Part shown: piece after piece, positions 19,831 through 62,293 of the stretch
Layout of the letters: every line of letters begins with the position of its first letter
Numbering within the stretch: the stretch's first letter is position 1
Translations under genes and position numbers: made by a program
Notes under the pieces: generated by a model
Seen by the model: the letters and a program-made list of their open reading frames with translations, nothing else
Told to the model about the DNA's origin: nothing
The model's database searches: none
From: Antechinus flavipes
Taxonomy: Eukaryota
Reading direction: 5' to 3'
NCBI RefSeq assembly: GCF_016432865.1
Contig: NC_067400.1
Location: 619,876,001-619,940,000, forward strand
Length of the DNA: 64,000 nt

Positions 19831-20953
19831 GGGGGGGAGTCATGGAGGAAATTGGAAAGGAAAGTATTTTCAATCAAAGATTGTGGTTGAACTTCCTCAT
19901 GCGCCAGCGTCCTACGGAGCCATAATGTAGAGGCCCAGGAAAGCTCCGCAACTTCATCCAGTCCCGGGGCTCAGAGGCTTCCTACGCGTGCGTCTCGGCC
20001 CCTGTATTCCTTCCCTGGGCCCGGTGCTCGTTACAGGCTATGTGGGCGCATGTGTGTGTGCATGTGGGCAATGTCTCCCCCTCAGACGTAAGCTTTCTCC
20101 TCCCGTCCATTCTCCACACACCCGGCAAACGAGGGGCACTTCCGGACGCTGGTTACCTGATTGCCCCGAGGCGCACAACAGCCTTAATAACCTTCTGGCA
20201 TGGAAAGCAAATCAAACCGAGTTTTTCCCAGAAGCCATTGTTGATAAGTCTAGTGACTCCCAAAATGAGAGGCCTTCCATACAAACGATCCCGGAGTCAG
20301 ACAGTAACAGCAGTTCGGAGGATGAGGATTATCATTATTAAAGAGACTTGAACAGTTAAAAATCAAGAGGATATAAAATCACCTTGAACCTTGAGAATTT
20401 TATTAAGATAAAAATTTAGGTCCAGACTGGAACAATATAACCCACCATAATTATGTATTTATACAGTCTTGTAATTCACAAAAATCACCAATATGGTAGT
20501 CTATTAAAATCCATTAAAAATATCAGGAACAAGGATCAGGAACAAAGACTGTAGCCAGAAGCTGATGGCAGCCCTAGCGATAGCCCAAGATGCCCAGCGG
20601 ATCAGTATTCAGGATCGACTCAAGCTTGTTTGGCTTCCACATCCGCTATAAGGAGGATGCAGCAGAGTCTGGCAGCAGCGAAGAGGGAAGAGACTTATTT
20701 TTCCAAGAGGCTAAAAAGCCCCAAAGAGCTGGAAGCTCAAATTCTTCTATTTCAAAGGAAGAAAACAAGGAATCCTGTTCAACTAAGTGCAATTTAGGAT
20801 GTACCTCCAAGAAGAAACTTAAACTAAAAGGAGGTGGGGACATGACAGATGAGCAAGATGAAACCCCTAAAAGGAAGAAAAATAAGTTCCCTTCACAAGA
20901 CAGTACCTCAGTGGAGGAAAAAGGAAGCAGTGGTAATTCACATCCTGACCAAT

Positions 20954-21422
20954 CATCACAAAACACAAACGATCTTTTGTCTGGAAGGAATATTTCAAGG
21001 ATGTGAAAAATGGGTGTCTCGTGTTTTTTAATACTCTACTTTCTGTTAGAGGATGTGCCACTTCATCCTTTGCAATAATTACTTCTTTCTTCAAAATCTT
21101 CATAGCATAATATTTTCCACTTGCCTTCTCTCGAACCAAATCACTTTCCCAAAAGTGCCTTTACCCAATAGTTTCAAATAGTCAAAGTCATTCATTGTCT
21201 TTCTTTTATGATGAGTTGTAGAAGCATCCATTTCCTCTTCTCCTATATTGTCAATTTGTGAAGTAGGACTACAATTCATCCTTTCCTCTTCTTGCCTCTG
21301 AAGTCTGTCTGCTGCAGCCTGGAGAGCTTCTGTCCATTCTTCCCTTTCCTCTGGAGTGTCCACATGAAATGTTCGTTCTATAACAGCGGTCCACCGGAGG
21401 CGTCTGATAATAAATGTGTTGG
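20954..21422 (-). pseudogene. AKT3: Processed AKT3 pseudogene fragment (end of PH domain, linker and start of kinase domain), frameshifted, truncated at both ends
   Basis: Intronless NTFIIR...[50 protein letters not shown], then a 1-nt deletion near 21138-21140, then [28 protein letters not shown]...RLCFVM. The linker sequence is AKT3-specific. No poly(A). Confidence 0.95.
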
Positions 21423-21454
21423 CCCCCGAGTAGAACGGGACGGGGCGCTGCGGA

Positions 21455-21502
21455 GCGGACGGAGCAATCTGCCCCGGGGCGGACGGAGCAATCTGCCCCG
21501 GG
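21455..21502. repeat. Perfect 24-bp tandem duplication in a CpG-rich segment upstream of C19orf84 exon
   Basis: gcggacggagcaatctgccccggg at 21455-21478 and 21479-21502. Confidence 0.95.
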
Positions 21503-21593
21503 CCGCACCCTTGCCCCGGTTTGGCTCCCGGCCCTAACCTGCTCGCGGAGGGATTCCCATCTAGCCCCTTCTTCAGGGTCCCTGTTTCCCAAG

Positions 21594-23593
21594 ATGGAGC
21601 GGCCGGAGCGGGCGGAGGCCGGAGGGTGAGCAGGGCCGAGAAATGCAAAGATTTGGAGACCTAGAGAGGGTCTAAGAGGAGGGTCGGAGGGCCCGGACAC
21701 CGACGGACAGAGACAGACCTGTAGGGGGAAGGGGCGCGCTGGGGAGGGGGGGGAGAGGGGCTGAGACCTGGGTGGGGATCCCGGGCCGGACTTCGGCCCT
21801 GCTCCACCCTCAGCTCCCTCAGGGACCTGACTCAATCGGCAACTTAATGGCAACTTACTGTGTGTCGGGCACCGAGTCAGGTGCTGGGGGTGCGATAAAC
21901 GAGACAGCCCGAAGGACTAGAAGTTGGTCAGTTCCTTCTCTCTGGAGTTCAGTTTGCCCATTTATAGAACGGGGCCGGAGCAGGGGGACCAGAAGGATGC
22001 ATGTGCAATTCGATGTTGTCTAAGGACTCCCTGAGCTCCGACATCCCCTGTTCTAGGTCCTCTCCCAGCTCTGACCTTCCCTGTTCTAGGTCCCTTCCAG
22101 CTCGGACATCCCCTGTTCTAGGTCCTCTCCCAGCTCTGACCTTCCCTGTTCTAGGTCCCTTCCAGCTCTGACATTCCTTGTTCTAGGTCCCCTTACAGCT
22201 CTAAACCTCTCTTGTTCTAGGTTCCCTCCCAGCTGACATCGCCTGTTCTAGGTCTTCTTCCAACTCTGATCTTCCCTATTCTAAGGGTCCTTCCAGCTTT
22301 GACATCCCCTGTTCTAGGTCCTCTTCCACTTCTGACATTTCCTGTTCTAAGGGCTTTCCAAGCTAAGACGTTCCCTCTTCCAGATCTTCTCCCAGCTCTG
22401 CCATTCCCTGTTCTAGGTTCCCTTCCAGCTCTGACATCCCCTGCTTTAGGTCCTTTCCCAGCTCTGACATTCCTTATTCTAGGTTCTCTCCCAGCTCTGC
22501 CATTCCCTGTTCTAGGTTCCCTTCCAGCTCTGACATCCCCTGCTTTAGGTCCTTTCCCAGCTCTGACATTCCTTGTTCTAGGTTCTCTCCCAGCTCTGCC
22601 ATTCCCTGTTCTAGGTTCCCTTCCAGCTCTGACATTCCTTGTTCTAAGGGCCTTCCAAGCTAAGACATTCCCTCTTCCAGATCCTGACATTCCTTGTTCT
22701 AGGAATCTAATCTAGAAATAGAAGATTCAGGCAAGGATGGGGACGTGGGTGCAGCTAGGGAAGAAGGGGCTTTCTCCTCTCTGACCCCTGGCCCCGTCTC
22801 ATTGCAGAAGCAGCCTCTCGGAGCCCCCGAAGCCGCCGGCCGCCAGCCCTGCTCCCCAGACGCTGGCCCTGAGTCAGGTGGGGCCGGGCCAGTGATGGCC
22901 CCCGGATCCCTGCTGCCCCAGCTCCTCCCCGAGGGTCTGGCCGCCCTCACCATCCCCATCCGCCTGGATGCCCTCTCCTACCTGCTCCACAGTGCCCTGC
23001 TTGGGGCCTACAGCCTCCGGCCCGGCCCCGCCATTTGCCCTTGCCACTCCGCCCCTTACGGGGCCTGGCCGGTGGCCCAGGATGCCCCCAGACAGCACTG
23101 GCCCAGGAGCCAGAGGCAGAGGGAAGTTAATTGGTCGGAGGAGGGGGAATTCAAGGGTGGTAGAGAGCCGGAGGCCCCCAAGAGACGGGCGCGCCCCTCG
23201 CCCCTTCGGCCGGCCCTCAAGGACCAGGGGAGCGAGTCCTGGCGGCGCAGACCCCTCGCCCCTCCGCCCAAGCCCAAGGAGGAACAGGAGAGCAGGTTCC
23301 ACCATCGCCGAAGCCCGGCCGCCTCCTGCACGTCAGCCCCGGCGGAGTGGGAGAGGGATTATCAGCACTGCAGGCCTCCTGTCCCTCCTTCCCCGCCCAG
23401 GGAAGATTGGGAGGGGGGCTACCACCGCCCGAGGGCCCCAGCTGCCGCCAGCCCCCCACCGGCTGAGGACTGGGAGACCGAGTACTACGGAGCCGGGACC
23501 CCAGACCCCCGGGACGCCCCTTTGGGCCGCTCTGAGAGCCCGCTTCTGGAGGACAAGGAGAGCAGCCCCGAGGCCCGGGGCCTCCAGCCCTGA
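21594..23593 (+). CDS. C19orf84: C19orf84 ortholog (piRNA-directed DNA methylation adaptor); coding exons 21594-21625 and 22808-23593 with a frame discrepancy; conserved frame opens at ATG 22895 (232 aa)
   Basis: Contains [29 protein letters not shown] and AEDWETEY, matching human ([29 protein letters not shown]...AEDWETEY). The small exon [10 protein letters not shown] has acceptor cttcag (21576) and donor gtgagc (21626). The strong acceptor is at 22807 and AATAAA at 23926-23931. Position upstream of LIM2 is syntenic. Confidence 0.85.
22031..22705. repeat. ~30-bp minisatellite (ccagctctgacattccctgttctaggtccct) in C19orf84 intron
   Basis: About 20 or more visible degenerate copies. It explains ORFs 22217..22690 and 22299..22715. 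Confidence 0.95.
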
Positions 23594-28300: not shown

Positions 28301-30642
28301 AAATATAAAACTTTAAATATTCACTCATTCATTTCTCCAGATGATATTCAGCCCCATTGGTCTAGTGGCTCTCTATATGACTATCTTCCATTGGTGAAGT
28401 TGATTTCTTGAACCCAAGTGTAAAAGTTTACATTTATCATTCATTCATTTCTTGAACCCAAGTGTAAAAGTTTACATTTATCATTCATTTCTCCTGATGA
28501 AATTCAGCCCCGTTGGTCTAGTTGGTCAATATCTTCTGTCTTCCACTGGTGAAGTTGATTTCTTGAATCCAAGTATAAAACTTCACACTTAACCTTCATT
28601 TCTCCTGATGAAATTCAGCCCCATTGGTCTCGTGGCCCACTATATGACTATCTTCCACTGGTAAAGTTGATTTCTTGAACCCAAGTGTAAAATTTACACT
28701 TATCCCTCATTCATTTCTTCTCATGAAATTCTCGGAGACTGTGTCAGGGAATCAGAACAAATCTAAGCAGTCCTGCCAAGCTGGGAAAGCCTTCCGCCCA
28801 AGTCCAACTAACCTTGCAGAGCCTTGAATAGGCTTGTCACCAGAAGGTTGGCCAGAAGGGGAAGAGAACACTGTGGTTCTGGAGGATTGGGGAGGGTTTT
28901 CCCATAGGCTGTGTCTATCCTGAGTCTGGGAGGAAGAGGAGGATTCTACAGAGCAGAGACAAGGAGAGAGGGCTTGACCTATGGGTTTGCAAAGAACCAG
29001 AGGAGGTAAGGCTGAAGTTGAGAAAGCTCTCCTCTCCCAATCGAACTAGAAATGTGGGAGGGAAATTGGGGGGAAAAGGCAGAAAAGGCCAGCCCTCCGA
29101 GCTGGCTCCATAGAGAAGCAATTGGATCTGGAGCTACAGACTGGATCATGTAACCTCTTGTAAAACTTGGGGCTCTTAAAAGAACACAGAATCTGGAGTC
29201 GGAGGTCTTGGGATTGAGTTCCAGGTCTGCCATTTAATGACATGACAACCTCTCTGGGCTTCAGTTTCTCATCTGTAAAATAAGCCTCTGAGGTCCATTC
29301 CTAGGTCCTGCTGCCGTTGAGAAAATCAGGTCAATGGAGAGCTCTTTGTGAGCCTTCGGGCTATAACTTTTTATTCTCCTTATTAAAGCCTGGGCTGCTA
29401 GTCTGTGCTTTAGCCTCTAGGTGATAGGGAGCCACCAGAGGATTATGAGCAGGGGAGGGAAGATCAGGATTCCTTTGACAAATGTTACCGGTAACCATGG
29501 AAAGAGGCAGTTGCCGGAGACTGGAGGAACGCAGGCAGATGGCTGATGACAGAGTGAGCTGAGATTTGTATTGGAGGGGGGAATGGAAGGTGGGGAGTTC
29601 ATGTAAGGAAGGAGAAAGGGTATGAGGGCTAAGAAAGGCCATTAATGGGCGAAGTCAATGGCTGAAGAGCTCCGTGGTACGTTGGGGAGGGGGGAATAGA
29701 GCAAGACCAAAGGTGGGGGTAGGTTGTGGAAGTGGGGAAGCAGGGTGTCTGGACCCCGCGCCCCAGCAATACTCCAGCACGCGATGGCCGACACGTGAGA
29801 ACGAAGAAGTGAGCAGCTGTTGCCCCTTCAATAGCATATTGGAACGCGACGCGGGCCTTCATGATCCTGGCGGCTCTCTGCTGCTTTGTGGGGATTGTCA
29901 TCGGGATCCTGGCCTTTGCCCAGCTGCCCACCTTCCACCGGCTCACGCGCCCCTTCTCGGCGGGCATTATGTTCTTTATCTCCAGTAAGTGACCCCCCTC
30001 TTTCCTCTTTGCCGACCTTCGCCCTCCCCAGCTCTGTCCGGACCCTTCCCAAGGACAGCCATGACCGCTCCCGGCCCTCAGTCCTGGCTCGAGCCCATCC
30101 CCAGCTCTCGCCCCAGTCCGTCCCTGACTCTAGAACCAGAAATCCTACTTTTAGTCCTAAATCTAGCACCATCTCCTCCCCCCCAGTCCCATGGCCATTC
30201 CCATTTTCAGTCACCTCACCACCCCTCCTCCCACGCTTCTCTCCGAGGGGGGGGTCAGGGTGCCCCCAGCCCCATCCCCTCCCCCGCCGCACCCCCAGAT
30301 CCATCCCGGCCCCCTCCCCCCAGTTTCTAGCCTTCCCCGCCCTGTCTCTGTCCAGCTCTCTTCGTCCTCCTCGCCATGGCCATCTACACGGGAGTCACCG
30401 TCAGCTTCCTGGGCCGCCGCTTCGGGGACTGGCGCTTCTCCTGGTCCTACATTCTGGGTTGGGTGTCTTTGCTCATGACCTTCTTTGCAGGTAACTATAG
30501 ACCCGGTGAGAGGCCGGGGCTTGGGGCTGAGAGGGCCTGGACCCTTGGCCTGGGTCCCCTCAGACCTTCCCTCCTTGTAGGGATATTTTACATGTGCGCC
30601 TACCGAATGCATGAATGTCGCCGCCTTTCCGGACCCCGCTGA
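25349..30642 (+). CDS. LIM2: Lens intrinsic membrane protein 2 (MP19/MP20), 173 aa; exons 25349-25523, 29835-29984, 30356-30490, 30581-30642
   Basis: MYSFMGGGLFCAWVGNILLVVATATDHWMQYRLSGAFAHQGLWRYC...AYWNATRAFMIL...RRFGDWRFSWSYILGW...IFYMCAYRMHECRRLSGPR. All introns are GT-AG phase 1, total 522 nt. AATAAA at 30973-30978. Confidence 0.98.
27820..28730 (-). mobile_element. CR1/L3-like fragment followed by ~115-bp degenerate tandem duplications (28255-28730) in LIM2 intron
   Basis: The unit cttccactggtgaagttgatttcttgaacccaagtgtaaaa...cattcatttctcc recurs about four times. The upstream sequence resembles CR1 3' regions (from recall). Confidence 0.55.
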
Positions 30643-31237
30643 GCCCGGGCGCCGTCCAGGGGGCCCTGGAGCCGTCCTGTCCCCGACCCCGGCCCCGGCC
30701 CCCTCCCCTTGGATCCGACTTCAGTGAAGGAGCAGCAGGAAGCCCGGTCCCCGAGGGGCTGGGCTCGGGCGGTCTGGCTGCTTGAGGCTCTGAGGGAGTA
30801 GAGCTGGGCTGGCCTGCATCTGGGGGAGGGGAGAGTGGGCTCGGACATCTGGGCCCCCGGGGGCAGCCGCGGGAGCCGCATCTCTGGGCCCCTGAAGAAT
30901 CTGGGGACAGGACTCTGAATGTCTGGGGGCTAGCCTGGGGGGGGGAGGATGGAAAGGCTTGTTCTGACCTCCAATAAAACTACTGCGAAGCCCACTCGTG
31001 GTCTCTGAGTCAACATTTGTCCAGCGGTTGTTGGGCCCCCCAGGGACGGCTCAGGAACCCCGGATGCGCGACCGGCCAGACGTGGGGCTCGTGGCCTGGG
31101 GATCGAGGCCTCTGTGCCTCTGGCGGGGCCGGGGGGATGAAGGACTGACCGTCCAGGCCCCTCGAAGGGGGGGGGGGCTGGGGAAAAGCGTTCCGTGGCA
31201 GTTGAAGGAGTCTCCCAGGAGCTGTGGAATCATGATC

Positions 31238-34200
31238 ATGGCTAAACTGGCCAAGCTGCGTTGCAACTTCATCTCCACCATCCCGGCATTGCTTTTCATC
31301 AAAAGTATCACCATCCTGGGCGTCATCTTCTTTAACCCCTCCTGGGCTTTCTTCTATAACTATGAATACGAGGCCTTGGTGATGGCCAACCCATGGGTCA
31401 TATGCGTGAGGAAGCAGTGTAAGGTCATCAAGCACATCGGTAAGGCCCCGACCCCGCCTCGCCTCCCGCGCTGCGCTCTGGGCTTCCTTCTCCCCCCAGT
31501 CCCAACCTGTGACCTCGGGGGTATGACCCCTCTCCTCCCCTCTCCCCCGTGTGTCAGCCATCTCTGGGCCCGGACTCTTTAACTAGTGACGGATGTGGTC
31601 CAGCTTTCAACATCGCCCCTGGGATGGGTGACTGGGAACCTGCAGCACCAGGCGGCGTGGGATGAGTGCTAGTCCCTGCCCTTCCAAACGGCGCTTCCCC
31701 TTTCCTACCTGACACTAGTGGCTGGACGCCTGATCAATAACTCCTCGCTCCTGCTTCCTAACCTCTGACCCCCTTCCCTTCCAGCATCCCCGAACCTGAT
31801 CCCTCGGTCGGGCCCCCCTCATCAACTCCCACCATCCCCTTTGGTTTTACTCAGTAAGATTAACCTTTATCTCTTCCCTAACCCTAGTTGATCCTCATCA
31901 ACTCTGGGCAAAGAACAGACCAGGATTTAACCTTTTGGCAACCTGGCTTGTGTGTAAAAGGTAGAGAGACTTGGAGGACAATTCAATTCAATTCCACAGA
32001 CATTTATGGAGGGCTTGTGGTCTACAGGGCCTTACGCTCAGCGCTAGGGAAGCAAACAAAATGAAACCAAAAAACCATCTCGTGACAAATGGTCAAACAG
32101 CACGTCTACAGCCGATGCTCCCATTTTGACCGAGTTGGTTTAACTCTGCCCAATCATTCTAGAGTTCTCAGCGTGCATTTAGTAAACATTTACTATGTGT
32201 CAGGGATTTCTGGGAATATAAAGAAAGGGGAAAAATCCAGCCCCTGTCCTTAGGATTTCACCACCCGTAGCCAACCTAGGGGTGAGATCCTCAGAACTTA
32301 GTAAGAGATCATTAGATGAATCATCATGATGATTATTCTTGTTATGTTGACAATATTGATATAATTAAGAGGTATTCATTATATTTCTATTATTCTAGTG
32401 AATTAGCATTGATGAGTAATCATATAATTAATACTTAACTAGTTGTTTTATTGATATATTAATTATATTGGTATGTTTGTACTTGATATAATTAACGTAT
32501 TATGTCAATAATAGCTCACATTGATGTAGTGTTTTAAGGTATCCAAAGTGCTTTCCACATATGATCTCGTTCATTCTCAAAACATGAGATCTGGGGGATC
32601 GAGAGGTTATTTTTATTCCCATTTTACAGATGAGAAATGTCTGAGGCAAGTTTCCAATTCAGTTCTTCCTAACTCCAAGACTTTCCACTCTAACCACCAA
32701 TTGAGAGCTTTTATTTTTTCACTTGAGTCTTTTGAGGAACCCTGGGTTATCTCCTTGCCATGACTAGGTTGAAATCTAAATGAGGGAAGCAAACATTGAT
32801 TAAGCACCTACTATGTGCCAGGCACTATGCTTAGTGCTTTCCGAGTATTATCTCATTTGATTTTCACAACAACTTTGAAGGGAATTGTCATTATTATCCC
32901 CCATTTTATAGTTGGGAAAACTTAAGGCTGAAAGAGGTTAAGTGACTTGTCAGCACAAAGTCACACAGCTTTCAGTGGTTCATATATCCATATTGGTTAT
33001 GTTTGTGAGAGAAAACACAGATCGAAAAACATAAAACATAAAAAACTAAAGCGAAAAATAGTTTGCTTTGTTCTGCACACACAAGTTCTTATTCTGGATG
33101 TGTATAGCATTTTTCACTATGAATATGTTTTGGCTCATTGTTTTGCTGAGAAAAGCTAAGTCAATTATAGTTAGTCATCACACAGAGTTACTGTTACTAT
33201 GTACAATGTTCTCTTAGTTTTGCTTAATTCACTTTGTATGAGTTCATCTAAGTTTTCCTAGGTTTTTCTGAAATCATCTCATTCACCATTTCTTATAGCA
33301 GAATAATATTCCATTACAAACATACATCAAAACTTGTTCAGCCATTACCCAAATTACAATTCTTTGTTACCACAAAAAGAGCTTCTATACATTTTTTGTA
33401 TAAATTGGTTCTTTTCCCTTTAAAAAATATGTTTGGGGAATATGAATAAACATTTTGCAAAGAAGAAATTAAAGCCATTTCTTGTCATGTGAAAAAGTAT
33501 TCTAAATCACTTTTGATTAGAGAAATGCAAATTAAAACAACTCTGATCTATCACTTCACACCTTTCAAATTGGCTAAAGAAAAGGTCATGATAAAAGTTG
33601 GAGGGGATGTCAGAAAATTGAGACACTAATGCATTGTTGGTGGAATTGTGAAAGGATACAATCATTCTGAAGAGCAATTTGGAGCTCTCCAAAGGGCTTT
33701 AAAACTCAAAGGTCTATAAAACTGGGCATACCCTTTGACCCAGCAGTGTCATTACTGGGTCTGTATCCCAAGGAAATCATAAAAGAGGGATGTGCAAGGA
33801 TGAATGTTGAAAATTATCTTTGAATGTATTTGGAAAAACAAAATAATATTTATTTTATTTTTACAAAATAATATTTAAAAATATCTTTCACATATAGAAT
33901 TTATATTGCTATTTCTGGTCAAAGGACATGCACAATTTTATAGTCCTTTGCTCCTAGTTCCAAATTGCTCTTCAGAATAGTTGGATCAGTTCACAATTCT
34001 ACCAATGGAGTATTAGTGTTCCAATTTTCCTACATGCCCTCCAATATTTGTCAGTTTGTTTTTCTGTCACATCAGTCAACCTGATAGATGTGAGGTACTT
34101 GGAGTTGTTTTAACATATATTTTTCTAATCATCATTGATTTGGATTTCTTCCTCTGAAAACTGCCTGTTTGTATCATTTGACCACATATCATTTGAGGAA

Positions 34201-36119
34201 TGACTTATTTTCTTATATATTTGATTCTGTTCCATTAAATATTTGAGCAACGAGGCCTATATCAGAGACATTTGCTATAAATTCCCCCTCACCTCCGGCT
34301 TTCAGCTTTTCTTCTAATTTTGGCTGTACTGATTTTGTTTGTGCAAACCCTTTAAATTTAATATTAAAATTATTCATTTTACATCTCATAATTCTATCTC
34401 TTGTTTAGTAATAAGTTCTTTCCTTGTCCATAGATCTGATAAACTATTCCATGCTCCCCTGATTTTCCTATGATCTCACTCTTTCTATCTAAGCCCTGTA
34501 CCAATTTTGACCTTATCTTGGGACACGGTGTAACATGTTAGTCTATACCTAGTTTCTGTCAAATTATTTAACAATTTTCCCTGAATTTTATCGAATAGAG
34601 AATTCTTGTCCCCAAAGCTTGGATCTTTCTGTTTTTCAAATACTACATTATTGTGATCATTGACTACTGTGTATTCTATACCTGATCTATGCCACTGATT
34701 CACCACTCTATGATTATTAGTATGGATAGGACATCTTCTTTCACATTTCCCCCCATTAATTTTCTTGATATTCTTCACCTTTTGTTCTTCCAGATGAATT
34801 TTATTATGTAGTTCAATTGGCATGGCACTGTATACATAATTTAATTTGAGTAAAATTGTTATTTTTATTATACTGGCTCAACCCATCCATAAGCTATTTT
34901 TTTCTGATTGTTTAGATCTGATTTTATCTGTGTGAAAAGTACTCTGTAATTGTGTTTTTATAGTCCCTGGATTTATCTTAGCATGTAGATATCCAAGTAT
35001 TTTATATTGTCTACTGTTAAGGGACAGATCAGTTCTCCAAGAGCCTCCACAGCTGTGGATCATAGCATCTGAAGGAGTCACAGGGCAGCCTTTGCTGACA
35101 CAGGTGTTGCAGATTGGGAATGAGATAAATTGGAGGCAGAGGGAAGAGGAGAGAGGTCAGCCATTGTCAGGTGGCTTCCGTGTATTCCAACAGTTCTTCC
35201 GTGTATTCGAACAGTCTACCTCTATTTAAAATGGAATTTCTCTTTGTATTTCTTGCTGATGGACTCTGTTGTCAATATGAAGACATGCTGATGTTCATTT
35301 ATGTGAGTTTTCTTTATATCCTGAAACTTGGCAAAGTTGTTAATTATTTCAACTAGTTTTTTAGTTGATTATTAAGTTTACCATCATATCATTTGCAAAG
35401 AGTCATAGTTTTGTTTGTTCACTGCCTATTTTAATTCCTTCATTTATAGTAACAATACATTTATAGTAACAATATTGAATAATTGTGGGAATAATGGGTA
35501 TCCTTACTTCAATCCTGCTCTTATTGAGAAGTCTTTCTAGCTTATCCCCATTACAGGTAATACTTGCTGGTTTTAGATATATGTTACTTTAAAGAAGATC
35601 CATTAGTTCATATGATCTCTAGGGTTTTTTTTTAATAGCAATGGGAGTTATATTTTGTCTAAAACTTTTGCATCTCTTGAGATGATCACATAATTGCTAT
35701 TGGTTTTGTTATTGATATAGTCACCTATGCTGATAGTTTTTCTAATATTGAATCAGCCCCGAATTCCTGGCATAAATCCTATCAGGTCATAATGTATGAT
35801 TCTTGTGATATTTTGCTGTAATTCCTTGGCTACCAATTTATTTAAAAATTTTTTTGCAGCAATCTTCATTAGGGAAATTGGTCTATAGTTTTCTTTCTCT
35901 GTTTTGGCTCTTTGGGGCTTAAGTATTTTTAGTTCCATGTTTGTATTTTTAAAATAATTTGATAGGCGCCTTCTTTGCCTATTTTTATTTTTTTCCAAAG
36001 ATTCTCTTTTTGGTTACATTTTAAGTTCTGAACTACCTGTTTCCTTTCCCACTTCATACTAGAGAAAGCTACCATTTGGCACGCACATTATATATAAATA
36101 TAAAAAGATAGCTAGAGGG

Positions 36120-36173
<54 letters not shown>

Positions 36174-39100
36174 CCTGTTCAGAGGACTTCTTAAAAAAAA
36201 AAACATTCTATGCATGCTTCTATTTATTAGCTCCTTCTCTGGAGTGAATAGCATCTTTTTTCATAGATCCTTTGTGGTTCATTTGAGTATTATAATATGC
36301 ACCATAGCTTAGTAATTCATAAACTTTTTTTGAACAATATTGCTGTTATTGTATACAATTTTCTCTTGGGTTCTGCTCATTTCACTCTTCATTATTTCAT
36401 GCAAATCTTTCCGTGTTTTTTTCTAAAATCAACTTACTCATTAGTTCTTACAGTACAGTAATACTCCATCATAATCACCTACACCACAACTTGGTTAGCC
36501 ATTGTCCAATTGATCAATGTCACCCCAATTTCCAGGTCTTTACTACCACAAAGAAAGCTACTATAAATATTTCAGAATATGTAAGTTCTTGCCCTTTTTC
36601 TCTAGTCACCTTGGGAAGCAGAGCTAAAATAGTATTGCTGGGTCAAAGGGTATACATGGCTTTATAATTCTTTGGAATTCAGATTCCTCTTCAAAATGGT
36701 TACATCACTTTACGGTTCCACCAACAGTGGATTAATGCCCTAATTTTTTCCCATCTCCCCAAAAATTTCTCATTTTCCCCTTCTAGCATTTTAGCCAAAC
36801 TGATAGGTTGTGAGATAATATCTTAAAGTTGTTTTATTTTGCATTTCTCTAATCAATCATTCAGAGCATTTAAAATTATTCTATATAATTTTGTTATTTT
36901 TATAAAGATAACACAAAGATTTATCACATTCTTTAAGCATTTATCAATTGGAGAACAACTTGCATTTGTATAAATTCGACAAAGTCCTTTATATATTTGA
37001 GTTGATTCTGCTCCCCATTGGCACATGGAGTGTGTGCACATTTATAGACAATACAAAATTCAGAAGACCCGAAAGAACAGCTCTTTGTTGTGAGAGGATT
37101 CAACAGGTATCGCTTCCAAATGGCAGGCTGGAGGAAAACCAAGCTGGCAAACGAAGACCAGTTTACTGAAGGAGGAGCTGGATATATGTTTTTCTGGAGT
37201 GGCCACAGCAAAAAGGAGCATGATTTTGCTTTTTAGAGTCATATTCAGCTCTATTCCAGTATTTCTTTTGGACTAACCAATTATTAATGACAATCTTAGA
37301 CATAGGGAATACATTTCCATGTATAAAATGGTTTGCCCTTATTGAGCCCCTTGAAATTAGTCTTTGATATTAGCTCTAATATATCAAATTTTCTACTGAG
37401 TTCAGGTTTGTTTGCAACAAAATCCTGAAAATCTGTTCCTTTTTTTCATTGAATATTATACTTAATTTTGCTGGACATAATTCAGCTGCAACTCTAGTTC
37501 TTTTGATTGTTGATATATAGTATTTCAGGACTTGAAGTCTTTTATTGTAGCCACTGGTAAGTCTTATAGGATTCTAATTATATGTCCAGTATATTTGAAT
37601 TTTTTATTGCTTGTAAAATCTTATCTTTGATCTGGAGGCTTTCTAAATTTAGCAATGATATTCTGTATGTTTTCCTTGTTTTCCTATCTTTGAGGTAACG
37701 ATTGTTTTTTTTTTCCTATTTCTACTTTCCCCTCTTGTTCTATCACTTCAAGATAATTCTCTTGAATTTTTTCTTGTATGATTGTTTCAAGATTCTTTTT
37801 TGTTTGGTCATAACTTGTAGGTGGTAGTCCAATTATTTTTTTCTCCTCTTGATAGCTTCTCTAGATGCGTTGTTTTTCTTATGAGATGCCCTACATTTCT
37901 ATTTTTTCATTATTTATATATATTTTTAATCATTTCCTGATCTGTCATAACTTCATAGTTTTCTCCTTGTCCAATTCAAATTTTTGAAGAATCATTTTCT
38001 TCTTAGAAATCATGGGTCTCCATTTCTAGTTGATTGACTTTTCATAATCTTCTTGGATTATTATAGTTTTTCCTTAATGTCTCTCATTTGATTTAAAAGT
38101 CTTTTTTGAATTCTTCTTTGGATAGATAACTATTTAATGTTACTCTTTGGGATTGGAGAGGCTTGTTTTTTACTTCTTTGTCCTCTTTTGAAGATGAATC
38201 CTTGTCTTCTTTACTCTCAGAATAACTTTCTGTAGTTGGGTTCTTTCTCCTTTGCCTGCTCATTTAAAAAAAAAAAAAGATAGCTTGTTAGTGTAATCAT
38301 TTCTAGTCCTGGGGTGAAGAGTGGGGATGGTGCTTCTGGCTTCAGGTGTTCCTTCAATTCAGCCCTTTGGCTTGGAATCCAAAACCAAGAACTCTACCCT
38401 CTTGTAAGTATCCCTGCCCCTACTATGACTCCATTCATCAGGCATGTGCTCAGCCCTTCTCACCCAGAGCCTATTCCTTATCAGCAGAGGTTCTTCAATC
38501 TTCCCAGACTCTGACCTGCAACTCCCCACATTGTCTGGGAGATGAAAGTTCCTGTGGTTTTGGCTGCTTCAGCCAAACTTGCTTGCTGTTTCAGCAGAAC
38601 TACATGGAGATATTTACTTGTTTGGTGAAGTTCACTTGTACATCCAAATGGTCCTGATGCTTCTTTTTTTCTTGGAAATTCATTTATGATCTATTCAATT
38701 TATTTTTCTAAAATAGGTTTGTTTGCATATTCTATTTTCTCTTGTGTTAATCTAAATGGTTTATCATTTTCATAAGTATTTTTTCATTTTACTTTAAATG
38801 TTTATAACTGGACAAAGCAACAATTGCTTTGATGTCACCTTTATTAGTGGTATAGTCCACCTTTTCATTCTTGATACTAGAGATTTGGTTTCTTTCTCTT
38901 TTTAAATCCTATTAACCAATGGTTTATTTTATAAAACTTATTTCTACTTTTATTTATTCAATGATTTTTATACTCATTTTTATTAATTTCACTTTTGATT
39001 TTTATGATTTGCAATTTGGTTTAGTTGGGGATTTTACTTTGTCCTTTTTTCTTAAAAAATTTTTTTTATATCTAATTTTTTTGAACTTTTTTAAAATGTT

Positions 39101-42100
39101 GCACATATAACTTGGTCTACTCTTTTTACATTTTATTGATGTAATCATTTAGAGATATGTTTTCCTCTGATTAGTGCTTTTGTTGCATTCCATTGGTTTT
39201 GCTATTTTGTCTCATTTTCCTTATTGTTTCTATGACTTGTTCATTTTTTTAATTGAAGCTTTCTCTTTTCAAAACAGATGCAAGGATAATTTTTAATCAT
39301 CAACCCTTTCAAAACCTTGTGTTCTAATTCCCCCTCCCCTTCCACCCTCTCCTCTAGATGGCAAATAACCCAATATATGTTAAACATGGTAAAACTATAT
39401 GTAAATTAGGGCACCTAGATAGTGAAGTAGATAGAGGACCAGCCTTGAAATCTCCTAACTTGAGTTCAAGTCTGCCTTGACTTGAACTTGACCTTGAAGT
39501 TAAGTGTCGCTTAACACTTCCTAGCTATGTGACTCTGGTAAGTAACTTAACCCCAATTGCCTCAGGGGAGAAAAAAAAATATATATGTAAATCTAATATA
39601 GGCAAATATTTATACAATTATCTTCCTGCACAAGAAAAATCAGATTAAAAAAATGAGAAAAAAATTCACCAACCCTTTATCCAGTTGATAAATGGTCAAA
39701 GGATATGAATTTTGAGATGAAGAAATTAAAAATATTTCTAATCATATGAGAAGGTGTTCCAAATCACTATTGATCAGAGAAATGCAAATTAAGACAACTC
39801 TGAGATACCACTACACACCTCTCAGATTGGCTAAGATGATGAATGTTGGAGGGGATGCGGGAAAACGGGGACACTGATGCATTGTTGGTGGAGTTGTGAA
39901 GTGATCCAACCATTGTGGAGAGCGATTTAGAATTATGCCCAAAAAGTTATCAAACTTTGATCCAGCAGTGTTAATACTGGGCTTATACCCCAAAGAGATA
40001 CTAAAGAAGGGAAAGGGACCTGTATGTGCCAAAATGTTTGTGGTGGCCCTGTTTGTAGTGGCTAGAAACTGAAAACTGAGTGGATGCTCATTCAGGTAGA
40101 GAATGGCTGGATAAATTGTGGTATATGAATATTATGGAATTTTATTGTTCTGTAAGAAATGACCAGCAGGATGATTTCAGAGAGGTCTGGAGAGACTTAC
40201 ATGAACTGATGCTGAGGGAAATGAGCAGAACCAGGAGATCATTGTACATGGCAACAGTTAAGATTACATGATGATCAATTCTAATGAATGTGGCTCTTTC
40301 CAACAATGAGATGATTGATGCCAGTTCCAATGGTCTTTGTGATGGAGAGAGCCATGTGTGCCCAGAGAGAGGACTTTGGGAACTGAATGTGGATCCCAAC
40401 ATAGCATTCACACTCTTTTTGTTGTTCACGTGCATTTTGTTTTCTTACTCATTGACTTTGTATGACCTGATTTCTCTTGTGCAGCAAGAGAATTGTATAA
40501 ATATGCTTATTATATTGCATTTAACGTATATTTCAACATGTTTAATATATATTAAATTACTTGCCATCTAAGGAAGGGGGGGGGAGGAGGAGGAAATGTG
40601 AAACACAAGGCTATGCAAGGGTCAATGTTGTCAAATTATCCATGCATATATTTTGAAAATAAAAAAAGCTTTATATATAAAACAAAAAGACTCAAGCAAA
40701 CAACAACAAAAGAAGTGCAAATGCCAGTTGAGCCATACTCGGTCCTCACAGTCCTCTCTCTGGGTGTAGATCACAAAGTCTTTGGAACTGGCCTGAATAA
40801 TCTCATTGTTGAGAAGGGCCAGGTATGATTTCTTCTTTAATCCACTCATTCTTTCAGATTAGTTCAGTCCCCCATTAATTTCAATGTATTTTCACGATTT
40901 CTTATTTTATTGCATCATCTGGAACGGACGCATTTACTATTTGATTAACATTTTATTGATGTAAGGATTTAGAGATATACGTTTTCCTGTGATTACTGCT
41001 TTTGTTACATTCCAGGTTTTGTCTGATTCTTTTTTTTTTTTTTTTAAATCATTTTAATGATTGTTTTTACAAGTTGTTCTTTAGCCCCTTCATTCTTTCA
41101 GATGAGCTAAGTTAGTCCCCATTCACTTTCCGATTAGTTTAGTCCCCAATTAATTTGAATGTTTCCATGGTTTCTTCTTATTTTATTGCATTATGATCCG
41201 GAAAGGCTGCGGGGAATATTTCTGCTTTTCTGCACTTAATGATAAGGTTTTGAACGTCCTAATAGACGGCCAATTTTTGTAAAGCTCCCATACGTGTTCC
41301 TTGCTCCATTCAGTTTTCTCCAGAGATCTAGCATTCTAACTTTTCCACAATTCTCTTCACCTCCTTATTTTGTTGAAGGCTGTCTGGCTCTGAGAGGAGA
41401 AAGTTGAGGTCTCTCACTAGCAGAGTTTTACTTTTCCCCCCGGGGAACTCATTTTACTTTTAAAACAGCAATTCTTCTTTCTGGACTCTCTCCTCCTGCC
41501 TCCGAACTTTCCCCTCCTTTTCATGCCGTTTTCACCTCCAAAAGCGCAGCCTCCAATGCGGCCCCTGGCCCACCCCTGCTCCCTTTCGTCTCGGGTCCCC
41601 CCCCTTCTCCCTCCTCCCGGGCCCCGGCCCCCCCTCCTGAGGCTCTCTCCGCCTGCCGCCTTCCCCTCCCGTCCAGGACAAGCCGAAGCCTGTCGCGTGT
41701 GTCTGGTGGTATCCCTGGTCCTGTCTATGCCTCTGGGCATAAGCGTGCTGGCCCACATCTTGGGACTGCTGTCCAGCTCGCTGCCAGAGACCATGCCCTT
41801 CTTCACGAGCATCCTTTGTCTGGCAAACGGTGCGTCCCGGGCCCGGGGAGACGGGCTCCGGGAGTCCTGGGGGATGTGGGCGGAGCCGCGGCCCCCTCCC
41901 TTTCCTCGCCCCCCTTCTCTGCCAGGTTGCTTGCAGCCCGGCACCTCCACACCCAAGCCCCTCCCGAGCCCGTGTCACCCACCCCGCTACCCCTCCCGAG
42001 CCCGTGCCACCCACCCCGCTGCCCCTCCCGAGCCCGTGCCACCCACCCCGCTGCCCCCCCCCGAGCCCGTGTCACCCACCGCGTTGCCCCCCCCAGCCCG

Positions 42101-44070
42101 TGCCACCCACCGCGCTGCCCCCCCCCGAGCCCGTGTCACCCACCCCGCTGCCCCCCCCGTCCTGACTTCCCACCCCGCTGCCCCTCCCGAGCCCGTGTCA
42201 CCCACCCCGCTGCCCCCCCAGCCTGTGCCACCCACCCCGCTGCCCCTCCCGAGCCCGTGTCACCCACCCCGCTGCCCCCCCAGCCCGTGCCACCCACCCC
42301 GCTGCCCCCCCCCGAGCCCGTGCCACCCACCCCGCTGCCCCTCCCGAGCCCCTACCACCCACCCCGCTGCCCCTCCCGAGCCCCTACCACCCACCCCGCT
42401 GCCCCCCCGGTCCTGACTTCCCACCCCGCCGCTCCGCAGGTTTGGTCAAGTTTCTCGCCTTCATATTCTTCCACCTCCTGTTGACTCAGCTCAAGTTCCT
42501 CCTTCGGCTGTTCGATATGTGGCTCAGCTGGCCCTCCTACTTGCTCCTGACGTCCTCGGTGATCTACATCGTGGTCGGTGCGGCCGGGGAGCGAGCGCCG
42601 GAGCCGGGGAAGAAGGGGAGGGACGCGGATGGGTCAGGAGAAGAGGGGAAGGGGAATGGAGGAGGAGAAGCGGCCGAGGGAGGAGGAAAAAGGGAAGGCG
42701 AGCTTGTTGAGGCAGAGAAAAGGAAGATTTCCAATGGCAGGAGACCCCTGTGGAGGAGGGGACCACGGAGAAAAGGGGAGGCTGGCAAAGGGAGTGGAGA
42801 AGGTAAAGGGGATGAATGAGGAGGAATGAAAGGGAAGGCCATGAAGTGGGAGAAGCTGTAGAAAGATGGAAGAATGAGAGGTGTGAAGCCTTTGACTCAG
42901 GCTGCTGTTGGGAGGTAGGGAAGACTACCTACATGGGATATAAAGGGAGAAAGGAGGCAGCTGGGGGGCCCAGTGGATAGAGCACCTGCCCTGAAATCAG
43001 GAGGATCTGAGTTCAAATCGGGCCTCAGACACTGAACTCTTCCTAGCTGGGTGACCCTGGACAAGTCACTTAACCCCAACTGCCTCAGCAAATAAATAAA
43101 GGGAGGGAGGAGGGAGCTGTCAGAGAAAGAATAAGCAGGAGGAAGTAGCGAAGGAGGGTAGAAGGGATAGTGTAAACCATGCAGAGGCAGCTAAGGGGCA
43201 ACTGAAGTGAAAGGGTCCTGAGTTCAGATTTCACCCATCACTTTTAAACAGGTTGGGGAAGCCATTCAACTTGTTTCCTTGTCTGTAAAATGGGGATAAC
43301 AGCACTCCCTCCCAGCGTTCTGAGGATCAAATAAGATATTTGTAAACTGCTTTACAAACCTTTTAGTACTATGTAAATGCCATTATATAGGGCAGAAGGC
43401 AGCAAAAAAAAAAAAAAAAAAGGGGGGGGGACAGCGTATTGAGGCAACGGTTTTGAGAGTATAGACTGGGGTGGAAGAAGCAGGCAGGTAATATTGGTGG
43501 AGAGGAAGAGAGATGGACAGGGAATATAATGACCACAATGAATGCAAGTAGATCTTGGGGTGGAGCACCGAGGCCAGGGCAAGAAAATAAAGGAAACGAG
43601 TTGCCTTCTTCTCCTGGGGAGTACAACTGGGACCTCTCTTTTCCCTAGGGTCCATCATCTTCCATTATCACCTTCATCTCCTCACTTCCCAGAAAAAGCC
43701 TTTAGAGAAGCTGGTGATTTCCGAAAACACAATCGTCACGAAGAGTTTGAAAAATTTCTTAGCCTCCAGAATGACTGAAAAATCTGTCGGCACAAAGACC
43801 AAAACCACCCTCACCAGAGGTCTTGATGTCTTCTTGCACCCAAAGTTCAAAAGAACTCGACCTTCAAGTCTCAGGAAGTCCCACTTCTTTAAAAGAGTTT
43901 CTATTGCCAAGCTGTCTAACAGATCCTGGAGCTCTGAGCAGCCTTGGGTCTCCCAAAACCTTAAAACCTCTTCATATCCCATGGGCTTTAAGGTTCAGCC
44001 AATCATTATGAATCCCCTTCCCTCTGTGATTTCCGATGTTCCAAGTACTTCAAGTCACACAAAACTCTAA
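31238..44070 (+). CDS. Unnamed PMP22/EMP/claudin-family tetraspan gene A, 304 aa (306 from ATG 31232); exons 31238-31439, 41677-41829, 42440-42577, 43649-44070
   Basis: All three introns are GT-AG phase 1 and the frame is open throughout (915 nt). There are four hydrophobic segments, an ECL1 W...NPWxxCxxxxC motif, WLSWPSY before TM4, and a long basic tail. Candidate ATTAAA at 44392-44397. Joining exon 1 to exon 2 across 10.2 kb is inference. Confidence 0.8.
33000..38200 (-). mobile_element. Mosaic of LINE-1 fragments (mostly minus strand; a plus-strand piece at ~33480-33830) in gene A intron 1
   Basis: ORF 35753..35998 reads [20 protein letters not shown]...[12 protein letters not shown], matching L1 ORF2. 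Other T-rich antisense L1 segments are present. Confidence 0.75.
36120..36168. repeat. (TG)n microsatellite
   Basis: Directly visible. Confidence 0.95.
39408..39565 (+). mobile_element. WSINE1-like SINE
   Basis: gggcacctagatagtgaagtagatagagga...gagttcaa...gtgactctggtaagtaacttaaccccaattgcctc. Confidence 0.75.
39660..40690 (+). mobile_element. LINE-1 3' portion (ORF2 C-terminus, 3' UTR, A-tail)
   Basis: [19 protein letters not shown]...[16 protein letters not shown] and [20 protein letters not shown]; terminal aaataaaaaaagc. Confidence 0.9.
41955..42430. repeat. CpG-rich ~32-bp minisatellite (ccgagcccgtgtcacccaccccgctgcccctc) filling most of gene A intron 2
   Basis: Directly visible tandem copies. 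It explains the Pro-rich ORFs at 41523-42484. Confidence 0.95.
42953..43090 (+). mobile_element. WSINE1-like SINE
   Basis: ggcagctgggggcccagtggatagagcacctgccctgaaatcaggagg...gagttcaaatc...accccaactgcctc. Confidence 0.85.
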
Positions 44071-45096
44071 AGTCTTGCTCCCAAGAGCTCAGACACTTCT
44101 CCTCGTTGCTCTCTCCCCACGGTCACAATTCTCCTCCTGGAGGAGTCCTCCGCGGATCCTGATGCTGCTGGAGGTGTCTAACCTTTGTCCTTTCCCTCAT
44201 AACTCCCCTCTCAAGCTCGAGCCAAGATTTGCCCTCTGTGAGATCCATCTCTGGCCCTGTTGAGGACCTGGTGTAGACAGGAGCCTGGATATGTATGGAC
44301 TGTGGGGAAGCCAGATGGAGCAGAAAATGAAGATGTGTGAAGACAGAAGGATAAAAAAGAGATGAATGTCTATTTCCTACATTGTGTTGTCATTAAAGAA
44401 AGCCTGAGACTTCCTCCCGAACCAGTGTTCCACCATCTCCGTTATGTTTCCTGACTCCATCTCTAACTCCGCTCCCCACCTGTATCCCTCCTCCATCACA
44501 TCCCTATCTTTAAGCCCAGTCCCAGTTTGATCATTAACTCCAACCTGATGTCCACCCCCACTCTCTCCTCTAACCCATATTCTTATCTTTCCCCTCATGT
44601 CTAACTCCCATTCCACTATCCTCCCCAAGCCATAGCCAACTCACCACACCCCCAAATTCATGCCTATTTCCTACTGTTAGCTCCATTTCTAACTCCGAGC
44701 CCCACATAACCCCCCATCCTCTGCGGTACACTGGGGTGGGGGTGGTGATGTCAGCCTTGGGTATCTTGGAAGGTTCTGTGACAGTTGAGGCCCTGGAGGG
44801 AGTGGGGAAGGTCAGAAAAGCCTGGAAGGGGGAGCACAACTGTTGTACCTGAGGAGAAATCTGAGGGGACAAGGAGGGACCTGAAGGGATAAGAAGAGAT
44901 CAAGACTTGGGAAGGAGCTAAAGAGATGGGAGATAACTATGGCAGAAATAAAAGAAACTGAAGACAAATATTAGGGCCTGGATAAAGAGAGGAAGCAAAA
45001 CCGGATAAGGGCAGACCGATGGATAGTCCGGGCTCCCGGTCCTGGGCTGGGTTTTGCCTGCCTTGTACCCAGGAGCCTCTCAGCCTTTAGTGGAAA

Positions 45097-46372
45097 ATGA
45101 AGAAAAAGGGTTCATTAAACCAAAAAGACGAATTGGTGCCCTTCAAAATGGCCCTGAACATCCTTTGCCTTATACTTCTCCTCCTCACCGTGTTCTTGCC
45201 CTACTGGCTGAAGATACAAAAGTCTCAACAAGAGTGTATCCACGTGGGCATATGGAAATCCTGTGGGAATCACATATGTGAGAACCTTGTGAAGTCAGGT
45301 ACATGGGGACAGGGAGAAGAATGGAGGGCAGGAAGTGGGGATGAGGATTTCGAAGGAGGTAGGGAAGAGGGATGGGGTCAAGAATAAAGAGAGAATAAAG
45401 ATGGGGCTGAAGGTTGGACCAAGATGGAGGGTAGAGACTGAAGGTGGAGATGGGAATAAAGACAGAGAAGGGGAGTCAAAAGGACCCTTGGGCTTACAGG
45501 ATGTGTGTTCCGTTAGTCTGAGAAAGTTTCTTTCTGTGGGTGAGCAAATAGACACAGGAAGCTGATTGTGGGGACTTAAGGGGTGTGTGTGTGTGAATGT
45601 GAGTGTCTAAGAGTGTGTGTGTGTGTGCAAGAGTGTGTGTGAGCGTGTGAGTGTATGGCCATTGCCATCACTCCCTCTCTCCAGTCTTAATTAAGGCAGT
45701 TCAAGTGCTGATGGGCTCAGCCATTGTAACTGGCATCTTGGCTCTTGTGAACATTTTCCTGCTGCTGATCAATGTAGTGAATGATAGGACCTCCTTCTTC
45801 CTTTCCTCTGCCCTGTGCAGCTTTGTCACTGGTAAGATTCGGGGCCTCAGGGTCTTGGTCACGAGGTGCTGGGAGGCCGATCGCGTGCTGGTTCTGGGGC
45901 GGTGACCGCATCCGATTCTCCCCGCAGCCTTACTGGGCCTTTTTGGTCAAAGCATCTTCATGGTGACCACCAGCACTTCAGCGTTGGGACGCGTTGATTT
46001 CCTTTATTTTGACTGGGCCTTCTACCTAGGCTGGGGCACTTACATCCTCTACCTCCTGAATGGTGAGCCGGTGATAGGGGCTGAAAAGGGCTGGGGACGA
46101 GGAACGGGATTGGGAAGGAAGCGGAGGATGGGAGTGGGCAGAAGATGGAGAGAGGATTGGAAAGGGCCACAAGGGTGAGTTTGGAGACGGGTGTGGGAAT
46201 GGGGCTGGGCTGGGCGTGGAGGGGGTCTGGAGATGGGGATGAGAATGGAAACTTAGAGGCCTTCTTTCTCAAAGGGTCCCTGATACTGGTGAGGAAGCAC
46301 TCCACCAGGGTGAAGCCAGCAAAGCAATCTAGAGTCATGTCGATACAAGAGTGCAAGTCGGTGGCCGTGTGA
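45097..46372 (+). CDS. Unnamed PMP22/EMP/claudin-family tetraspan gene B, 193 aa; exons 45097-45298, 45685-45831, 45928-46062, 46275-46372
   Basis: All introns are GT-AG phase 1 with a clean 582-nt ORF. The claudin-like ECL1 reads W...GIWKSCGNHIC, and FDWAFYLGW precedes TM4. AATAAA at 46671-46676. Confidence 0.9.

Positions 46373-51869: not shown

Positions 51870-56077
<4,208 letters not shown>

Positions 56078-56581: not shown

Positions 56582-62293
<5,712 letters not shown>

Follow-up and report, generated by a model that had tools for sequence, protein, structure and literature searches.

We have analyzed a stretch of 64,000 nucleotides (nt) of the Antechinus flavipes genome, called here the window, to which all positions refer. 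It contains a tetraspan gene, which we call gene A, located between LIM2 and a second extra tetraspan gene, gene B. Gene A is probably a genuine coding gene, a very divergent tandem paralogue in the LIM2/gene A/gene B/NKG7/CLDND2 array of PMP22/claudin-superfamily tetraspans, which has been kept in marsupials. Our confidence in this reading is good. Four exons on the forward strand splice into an open reading frame (ORF) of 921 nt, which codes for 306 amino acids (aa) and ends in TAA. The same exons are intact in Sarcophilus, and full-length or partial orthologues are found in at least seven other marsupial species. An earlier note on this DNA, written from its letters alone, had proposed such an intact spliced gene with four membrane-spanning segments, and both proposals are borne out.

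Gene model and protein

The features of gene A and its surroundings are the following:

30973-30978, forward strand: AATAAA, presumed LIM2 poly(A) signal, the sole forward-strand AWTAAA between the LIM2 stop codon (30640-30642) and gene A, 254 nt before the gene A ATG
31232-31439, forward strand: exon 1, 208 nt, with ATG codons at 31232 and 31238, the first transmembrane (TM) segment, TM1, and extracellular loop 1, which includes [11 protein letters not shown]; donor TCG/GTAAGG, phase 1
31440-41676, forward strand: intron 1, 10,237 nt, AT-rich, with transposon remnants; 7.6 kb align to the Sarcophilus intron
34488-37573, reverse strand: decayed antisense L1, with ORF2 reverse transcriptase and C-terminal fragments and an ORF1-like fragment; the RVT_1 match is weak, the rest was recognized by eye
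41677-41829, forward strand: exon 2, 153 nt, with TM2, a short cytoplasmic loop and the start of TM3; phase 1; 93.5% identity to the Sarcophilus exon, no indel
41957-42409, forward strand: minisatellite with 14.3 copies of a 32-nt C-rich unit, which fills intron 2
42440-42577, forward strand: exon 3, 138 nt, with the remainder of TM3, a minimal loop 2 (FDMWLSWP) and most of TM4; weak donor TCG/GTGCGG, phase 1 within a Gly codon
43649-44070, forward strand: exon 4, 422 nt, with the end of TM4 and a basic, Ser/Thr-rich tail of 131 aa; TAA at 44068-44070
44392-44397, forward strand: ATTAAA, first of two candidates for the gene A poly(A) signal
44947-44952, forward strand: AATAAA, second candidate for this signal; the gene B ATG follows 145 nt further on

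The list agrees with what the earlier note had described: a start about 260 nt after the LIM2 poly(A) signal, a long first intron bearing L1 sequences and a second intron filled by a minisatellite. Intron 1 has a GC content of 0.31-0.37, against 0.5-0.68 for the surrounding locus. The RVT_1 match inside it is found at 35753-35995 on the reverse strand (expectation value, E, 2.6e-4), and motifs of L1 ORF2 and ORF1 were recognized by eye in open reverse-strand fragments over the whole 34488-37573 interval. The AWTAAA sites of this intron are mostly on the reverse strand. Intron 3 contains two elements similar to short interspersed elements (SINEs), at 42950-43110 and approximately 43180-43420. 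One of them is followed by an A-rich tract (43405-43420), and by eye they resemble tRNA-derived marsupial SINEs.

All three introns begin with GT, end with AG after a pyrimidine-rich acceptor, and are in phase 1. The protein starts with [13 protein letters not shown] and ends with SSHTKL. Kyte-Doolittle hydropathy detects four segments of TM length, approximately residues 13-35, 73-100, 109-140 and 152-175, so that gene A encodes a four-pass membrane protein. Both termini would be cytoplasmic according to the positive-inside rule. Loop 1 (about 37 aa) is larger than loop 2 (about 10 aa), which is the topology of PMP22/claudin-type proteins. The claudin signature of loop 1 is W-(G/N)LW-x2-C-xn-C. 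Gene A has W-x2-C-x4-C, spaced and placed relative to the exon boundary as it is in LIM2 and gene B, but with NPW or SPW in place of GLW, and its two cysteines probably form a disulfide, judging from the motif. The [11 protein letters not shown] of the Antechinus loop contains NPW-x2-C-x4-C. Replacement of GLW by NPW, as stated in the earlier note, is correct for dasyurids, but it is not general: The triplet is SPW in koala, wallaby and opossum. The C-terminal 131 aa contain 23 Lys or Arg against 6 Asp or Glu, with an isoelectric point of 11 and 26% Ser/Thr, and no domain has been detected in them.

Array, orthologues and constraint

In the Sarcophilus locus (L001) the genes are found on one strand in the order C19orf84, LIM2 (173 aa), gene A (298 aa), gene B (192 aa, PMP22_Claudin), NKG7, CLDND2, ETFB. 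The wallaby has an identical order from C19orf84 through CLDND2. Gene A also lies between LIM2 and NKG7 in bilby and Gracilinanus, which makes four loci read together with those of Sarcophilus and wallaby. Neighbour gene models were rebuilt in Antechinus, and the exon comparison covers LIM2, gene A, gene B and NKG7; exon 1 of CLDND2 was ambiguous in splice modelling. The lengths of the four coding exons are:

LIM2: 175, 150, 135 and 62 nt
Gene A: 208, 153, 138 and 422 nt
Gene B: 202, 147, 135 and 98 nt
NKG7: 154, 156, 135 and 62 nt

The four genes have in common four coding exons, phase 1 introns and a third intron which splits a Gly codon in TM4. Exon 2 always measures 147-156 nt and exon 3 135-138 nt. 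In LIM2, gene A and gene B, the W-x2-C-x4-C motif is located 6-7 residues before the end of exon 1. These common features are strong evidence that gene A arose by tandem duplication within the LIM2-NKG7 array.

Gene B, in the interval between gene A and NKG7, is found at 45097-45298, 45685-45831, 45928-46062 and 46275-46372 on the forward strand and codes for 193 aa. Its exon 1 gives a weak PMP22_Claudin match, and its Sarcophilus and wallaby orthologues carry PF00822. The gene tables of bilby and Gracilinanus have no gene called at this position.

Exon 1 of gene A has 100% identity to the RefSeq uncharacterized protein LOC127556434 of Antechinus flavipes, and 82% identity to isoforms X1 (298 aa) and X2 of Sarcophilus LOC100920296. 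Further orthologues are koala LOC110219806, a tammar wallaby protein of 300 aa, opossum LOC130453483, with several isoforms, and bilby LOC141509733. In Antechinus, Sarcophilus, koala, wallaby, bilby and opossum, RefSeq labels them "uncharacterized protein LOC…". In Gracilinanus and Petaurus, on the other hand, gene A is found within models called "NKG7 isoform X2" and "NKG7". The earlier note was therefore mistaken in considering the gene undescribed: Gnomon/RefSeq models exist in eight marsupials, either as uncharacterized proteins or merged with NKG7. It appears as a gene already predicted in RefSeq, but unnamed and uncharacterized. A search of the literature library used here, on five of these LOC identifiers and on the LIM2/NKG7/CLDND2 trio, returned no paper on gene A.

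An exhaustive HMMER search of 1.84 billion representative proteins with a gene A profile gave eight matches, all of them marsupial. A word-indexed search of 5.8 billion clusters at E ≤ 10 gave 13 matches, 12 of which are named marsupial proteins; in the remaining one (P0014) the first 60 residues are identical to opossum proteins. No annotated relative outside marsupials was found in either collection (E ≤ 10 for the clusters). So far, gene A thus appears restricted to marsupials: Didelphimorphia, Dasyuromorphia, Peramelemorphia and Diprotodontia. These orders separated tens of millions of years ago. The TM core of the dasyurid proteins has about 49-54% identity with that of opossum or wallaby.

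Constraint was estimated with one species pair, Antechinus and Sarcophilus, using NG86 for the ratio of nonsynonymous to synonymous substitution rates (dN/dS, omega). In Sarcophilus all four exons remain intact, and the 897 coding nt compared contain no indel. In this comparison introns have accumulated 6.6-17.6 indel events per kb, or 6.6-28 if flanks are included, and the intron rates would predict 6-16 events in the coding stretch of gene A. The earlier note had attributed the open frame to selection, and had named disabling mutations in related species as a check: Sarcophilus has none by this count, and the indel comparison supports selection on the frame. The omega values are:

Gene A, whole: 0.71 (bootstrap 0.42-1.24)
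Gene A, TM core: 0.49 (bootstrap 0.26-0.99; below 1 in about 98% of bootstraps)
Gene A, tail: 1.18
NKG7: 0.51
Gene B: 1.20
LIM2: 0 (dN = 0)

The value for the TM core is close to that of NKG7 in the same species pair. Because the frame is free of indels, the omega of the TM core is low and this core is conserved between orders, the data indicate that gene A codes for a protein, that purifying selection on it is weak and that its tail changes rapidly. A weakly constrained core with a fast tail is a common pattern in reproductive and immune genes.

Other features of the window lie outside gene A. Contiguous ORF fragments that lack introns, at 20867-21648 on the reverse strand, match an AKT-like PH domain (E 4.5e-3) and, after it, the beginning of a protein kinase domain (E 2.9e-7). 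They seem to be what is left of a processed pseudogene of an AKT-type kinase, and are located upstream of C19orf84. Downstream of ETFB, immunoglobulin-domain exons (I-set, Ig_3, Ig_2; E 1e-8 to 2e-9) are found at 57240-61000 on the forward strand. We take them to be the VSIG10L-like neighbour of eutherian synteny. Around the 5' end of ETFB and in its introns there are long G/C-rich tandem repeat tracts (52178-52992 and 53781-54738), which are open in several frames on both strands. It is very unlikely that the ORFs derived from these repeats are coding.

Contrary evidence and other explanations

Several observations weigh against a constrained gene of this superfamily. No Pfam family reaches its threshold with the gene A proteins: The HMMER check for PMP22_Claudin and Claudin_2 suggested in the earlier note gave no match to PF00822 or PF13903 at E ≤ 10, while the Clc-like family (PF07062) reached 14-17 bits against a cutoff of 24.9. 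Sequence similarity to LIM2, gene B and NKG7 is not detectable either. The hidden Markov model of the gene A family gives 7.4 bits with LIM2 and 6.1 bits with gene B, within the range of 1,500 shuffled decoys, and NKG7 does not rise above the decoys. AlphaFold2 models of gene A are poor (predicted local distance difference test, pLDDT, 47 with a three-sequence alignment and 53 with eight sequences). The Foldseek matches of these models to Swiss-Prot AFDB and PDB all had E > 0.8 and were discarded as meaningless, and the family profile found nothing relevant among PDB sequences. The Antechinus protein has no canonical RVxF PP1-docking motif, [RK]-x(0,1)-[VI]-{P}-[FW]. Substitutions in the exons accrue at about the neutral rate, with a p-distance of 0.065-0.123 (about 0.09), compared with 0.077 in intron 1 and 0.093 in intron 3. 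The omega interval of the whole gene includes 1, and the tail exceeds this value. As for the absence of stop codons, 86 random substitutions would leave the frame open with P = 0.054, which alone is not decisive. Finally, the ATG at which other marsupial gene A models begin is lost in Antechinus, and the donor of exon 3 is weak, RefSeq implying a different one which cuts the protein to 183 aa.

The last two points concern the gene model itself. The ATG used as a start in the other marsupial models examined corresponds to a CTG at 31256 in Antechinus (position 10001 of L001 in Sarcophilus). The in-frame ATGs of Antechinus, of which the one at 31238 has the better Kozak context, sit 6-8 codons upstream of it; their Sarcophilus counterparts are an ATA and a region with an 8-nt indel. 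The start codon has therefore turned over.

Regarding the junction, the RefSeq Antechinus model LOC127556434 (P0001) has the same exons 1-3 as ours, with an implied donor 4 nt upstream (42573/42574), which shifts the frame of exon 4 and leads to a stop after 18 codons. The sequence around both candidate exon 3/4 junctions is identical in Sarcophilus, where RefSeq uses a junction of the 42577^43649 type. Read in the 306-aa frame, the tails of Sarcophilus, wallaby, bilby, opossum and Gracilinanus align collinearly, and the motif SNRSW..EQPWVSQ..KTSSYP.GF.VQ is kept in Australian marsupials. Because of the Sarcophilus junction, the collinear tail and the Gly codon split in TM4 which LIM2, gene A, gene B and NKG7 have in common, the 306-aa model is better than the RefSeq one. 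The 42577-43649 junction listed in the earlier note thus fits the cross-species evidence better, and the public Antechinus model appears frameshifted at this point, an annotation which may now be mended. Other forms, wallaby X2 among them, may nevertheless exist.

An unlikely explanation, although the best placed of the alternatives, is that gene A is not a marsupial invention, but either orthologous to eutherian TMEM225/TMEM225B or the ancestral locus of this family, retained in marsupials. The TM225 family (PF25452) gives sub-threshold matches, with a cutoff of 27 bits: 19.6 bits in koala (E 1e-3, positions 20-159 of the 165 in the profile) and 17.5 bits in opossum (E 4.5e-3). Both are collinear and span nearly the whole domain. 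In the ESM Atlas, a TMEM225B-like cluster is the top structural neighbour of Sarcophilus and wallaby gene A (template-modelling scores 0.83 and 0.78), and ranks first for the wallaby protein by language-model features as well (0.90, with 195 features in common). The Atlas models (predicted template-modelling score 0.51-0.52) align with the TMEM225B-like, LIM2, claudin and ODF4 clusters at 0.75-0.83. The tail alone finds no informative neighbour, with scores of 0.66 or less. A long cytoplasmic tail is present in both groups of proteins. Nevertheless, PF25452 gives no match in six of the eight gene A family members, including the dasyurid, wallaby and bilby proteins, and no TM225-family protein was found at E ≤ 0.001 in the exhaustive profile search or at E ≤ 10 in the word-indexed one. 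The resemblance to TMEM225 noticed in the earlier note has thus gained weak independent support from the sub-threshold and Atlas matches, but no match above threshold. It is a lead, not family membership.

It seems improbable, more so than TMEM225 orthology, that gene A is not independent at all, its exons being alternative upstream exons of a read-through unit with gene B and NKG7, or with LIM2, which would yield in-frame chimeric tetraspans. All introns of the array are in phase 1 at homologous positions, so that any combination of exons is in frame, and the gaps are small: 254 nt from the LIM2 AATAAA to gene A, and about 1 kb from gene A to gene B. Several public models have such a composition. 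Opossum P0014 (175 aa) is made of gene A exon 1 and NKG7 exons 2-4; the Petaurus "NKG7" (P0010, 268 aa) of gene A exon 3 followed by gene B exons and then NKG7 exons; and the Gracilinanus "NKG7 isoform X2" (P0009) contains gene A exons 2-4. It should be noted that the "NKG7" models of these last two species include gene A exons. The chimeras join gene A to gene B and NKG7, not to LIM2, the neighbour for which the earlier note had suggested read-through. However, self-contained models exist in Sarcophilus and wallaby, exon 4 has its own stop codon, a long conserved tail and its own ATTAAA and AATAAA downstream, and four marsupial orders conserve the exons together as one collinear block. Where paralogues lie in tandem, Gnomon commonly produces chimeric models by mistake, and the fused models may be either annotation errors or real chimeric transcripts.

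Least probable of all is that gene A is a duplicate which decays or is in effect neutral in dasyurids, with the Antechinus frame as a leftover and the RefSeq models as ab initio predictions: Equal exon and intron substitution rates, the omega values of the whole gene and the tail, the non-decisive stop probability, the lost start and the weak donor agree with it, but we rate it low because the frame is free of the indels expected, an in-frame upstream ATG substitutes for the lost start and the ORF, exon structure and TM core persist across four orders, with a core omega which is below 1 in nearly all bootstraps and similar to that of NKG7 itself.

Possible function and comparison with known systems

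If gene A is a coding paralogue of the LIM2-NKG7 array, its compact TM core may serve for anchoring and sorting in some specialised membrane, and the tail, which evolves fast, would be the working part, for docking or as a phospho-regulated scaffold. Our first guess, a tentative one which falls somewhat short of even chances, is a male germ-cell or sperm membrane protein. It is placed first because the nearest look-alikes, TMEM225/TMEM225B and ODF4, are testis tetraspans, and because of the C19orf84 neighbour and the evolutionary rate, which fits a reproductive or immune gene. The C19orf84 homologue (22745-23593, forward strand) matches PF17703, a family named for a protein of silencing mediated by PIWI-interacting RNA (E 1.3e-11). 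It is the immediate upstream neighbour of LIM2, an arrangement also found in Sarcophilus and wallaby, and may hint at a germline setting. The second guess, a doubtful one, is a membrane protein of cytotoxic-lymphocyte granules like NKG7, and the rest of the probability corresponds to other tissues.

TMEM225, a four-TM protein specific to the testis, is needed for male fertility, and male knockout mice are infertile (PMC10875271). It has been proposed as a regulator of PP1γ2 (PMC10875271 and its reference 21), and an RVxF-type PP1-docking motif in the tail on the cytoplasmic side is taken here as a mark of the family (after Matsuura and Yogo 2015, as cited in PMC10875271). In the gene A tail, a [DE]-V-x-W element is kept in other marsupials; it has no basic residue and is non-canonical, and in Antechinus it reads V-F-L. 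A PP1-docking role of the gene A tail was rejected, since the motif is neither canonical nor conserved.

There is a more speculative possibility, to which we give little credence: Gene A might be a missing link between the LIM2/NKG7 array and the TM225 family. TMEM225-type sperm tetraspans would have been born beside LIM2 by tandem duplication, kept in place by marsupials, with the SPW loop and the long tail, and relocated or lost in eutherians, and gene A would be a marsupial sperm-membrane protein needed for male fertility. TMEM225 presumably carries an SPW motif as well, and we assume that eutherian TMEM225 and TMEM225B are located on other chromosomes than the LIM2-NKG7 array. If the TMEM225 link or the germ-cell role were true, gene A would offer a fertility candidate specific to marsupials and might show where the TM225 family came from.

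In any case, gene A is a lineage-restricted, fast-evolving addition to a small array which is otherwise conserved across mammals (LIM2 of the lens, NKG7 of cytotoxic granules, and CLDND2). It illustrates how far the sequence of a tandem paralogue may drift while its exon phases and topology are retained. With LIM2 (MP20), NKG7 and CLDND2 it shares strand, array and four TM segments, and with LIM2 and NKG7 also the four coding exons, with phase 1 introns at homologous positions, an exon 2 of about 150 nt and an exon 3 of 135-138 nt. It differs from these three proteins in having NPW or SPW in place of GLW, an almost absent loop 2 and a tail of 131 aa instead of 10-30 aa, and from LIM2 also in its rate: LIM2 is frozen, whereas gene A has an omega of about 0.7. 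TMEM225 and TMEM225B are similar to gene A in their four TM segments and long cytoplasmic tail; the differences from TMEM225 are the 17.5-19.6 bits against a 27-bit cutoff and the absence of a canonical RVxF in Antechinus. ODF4, outer dense fiber protein 4, is a sperm-tail tetraspan of similar size, also with a tail, and the second-best structural neighbour in the Atlas (0.82 or 0.78, depending on the query). Its likeness to gene A is one of predicted structure, with no sequence signal seen.

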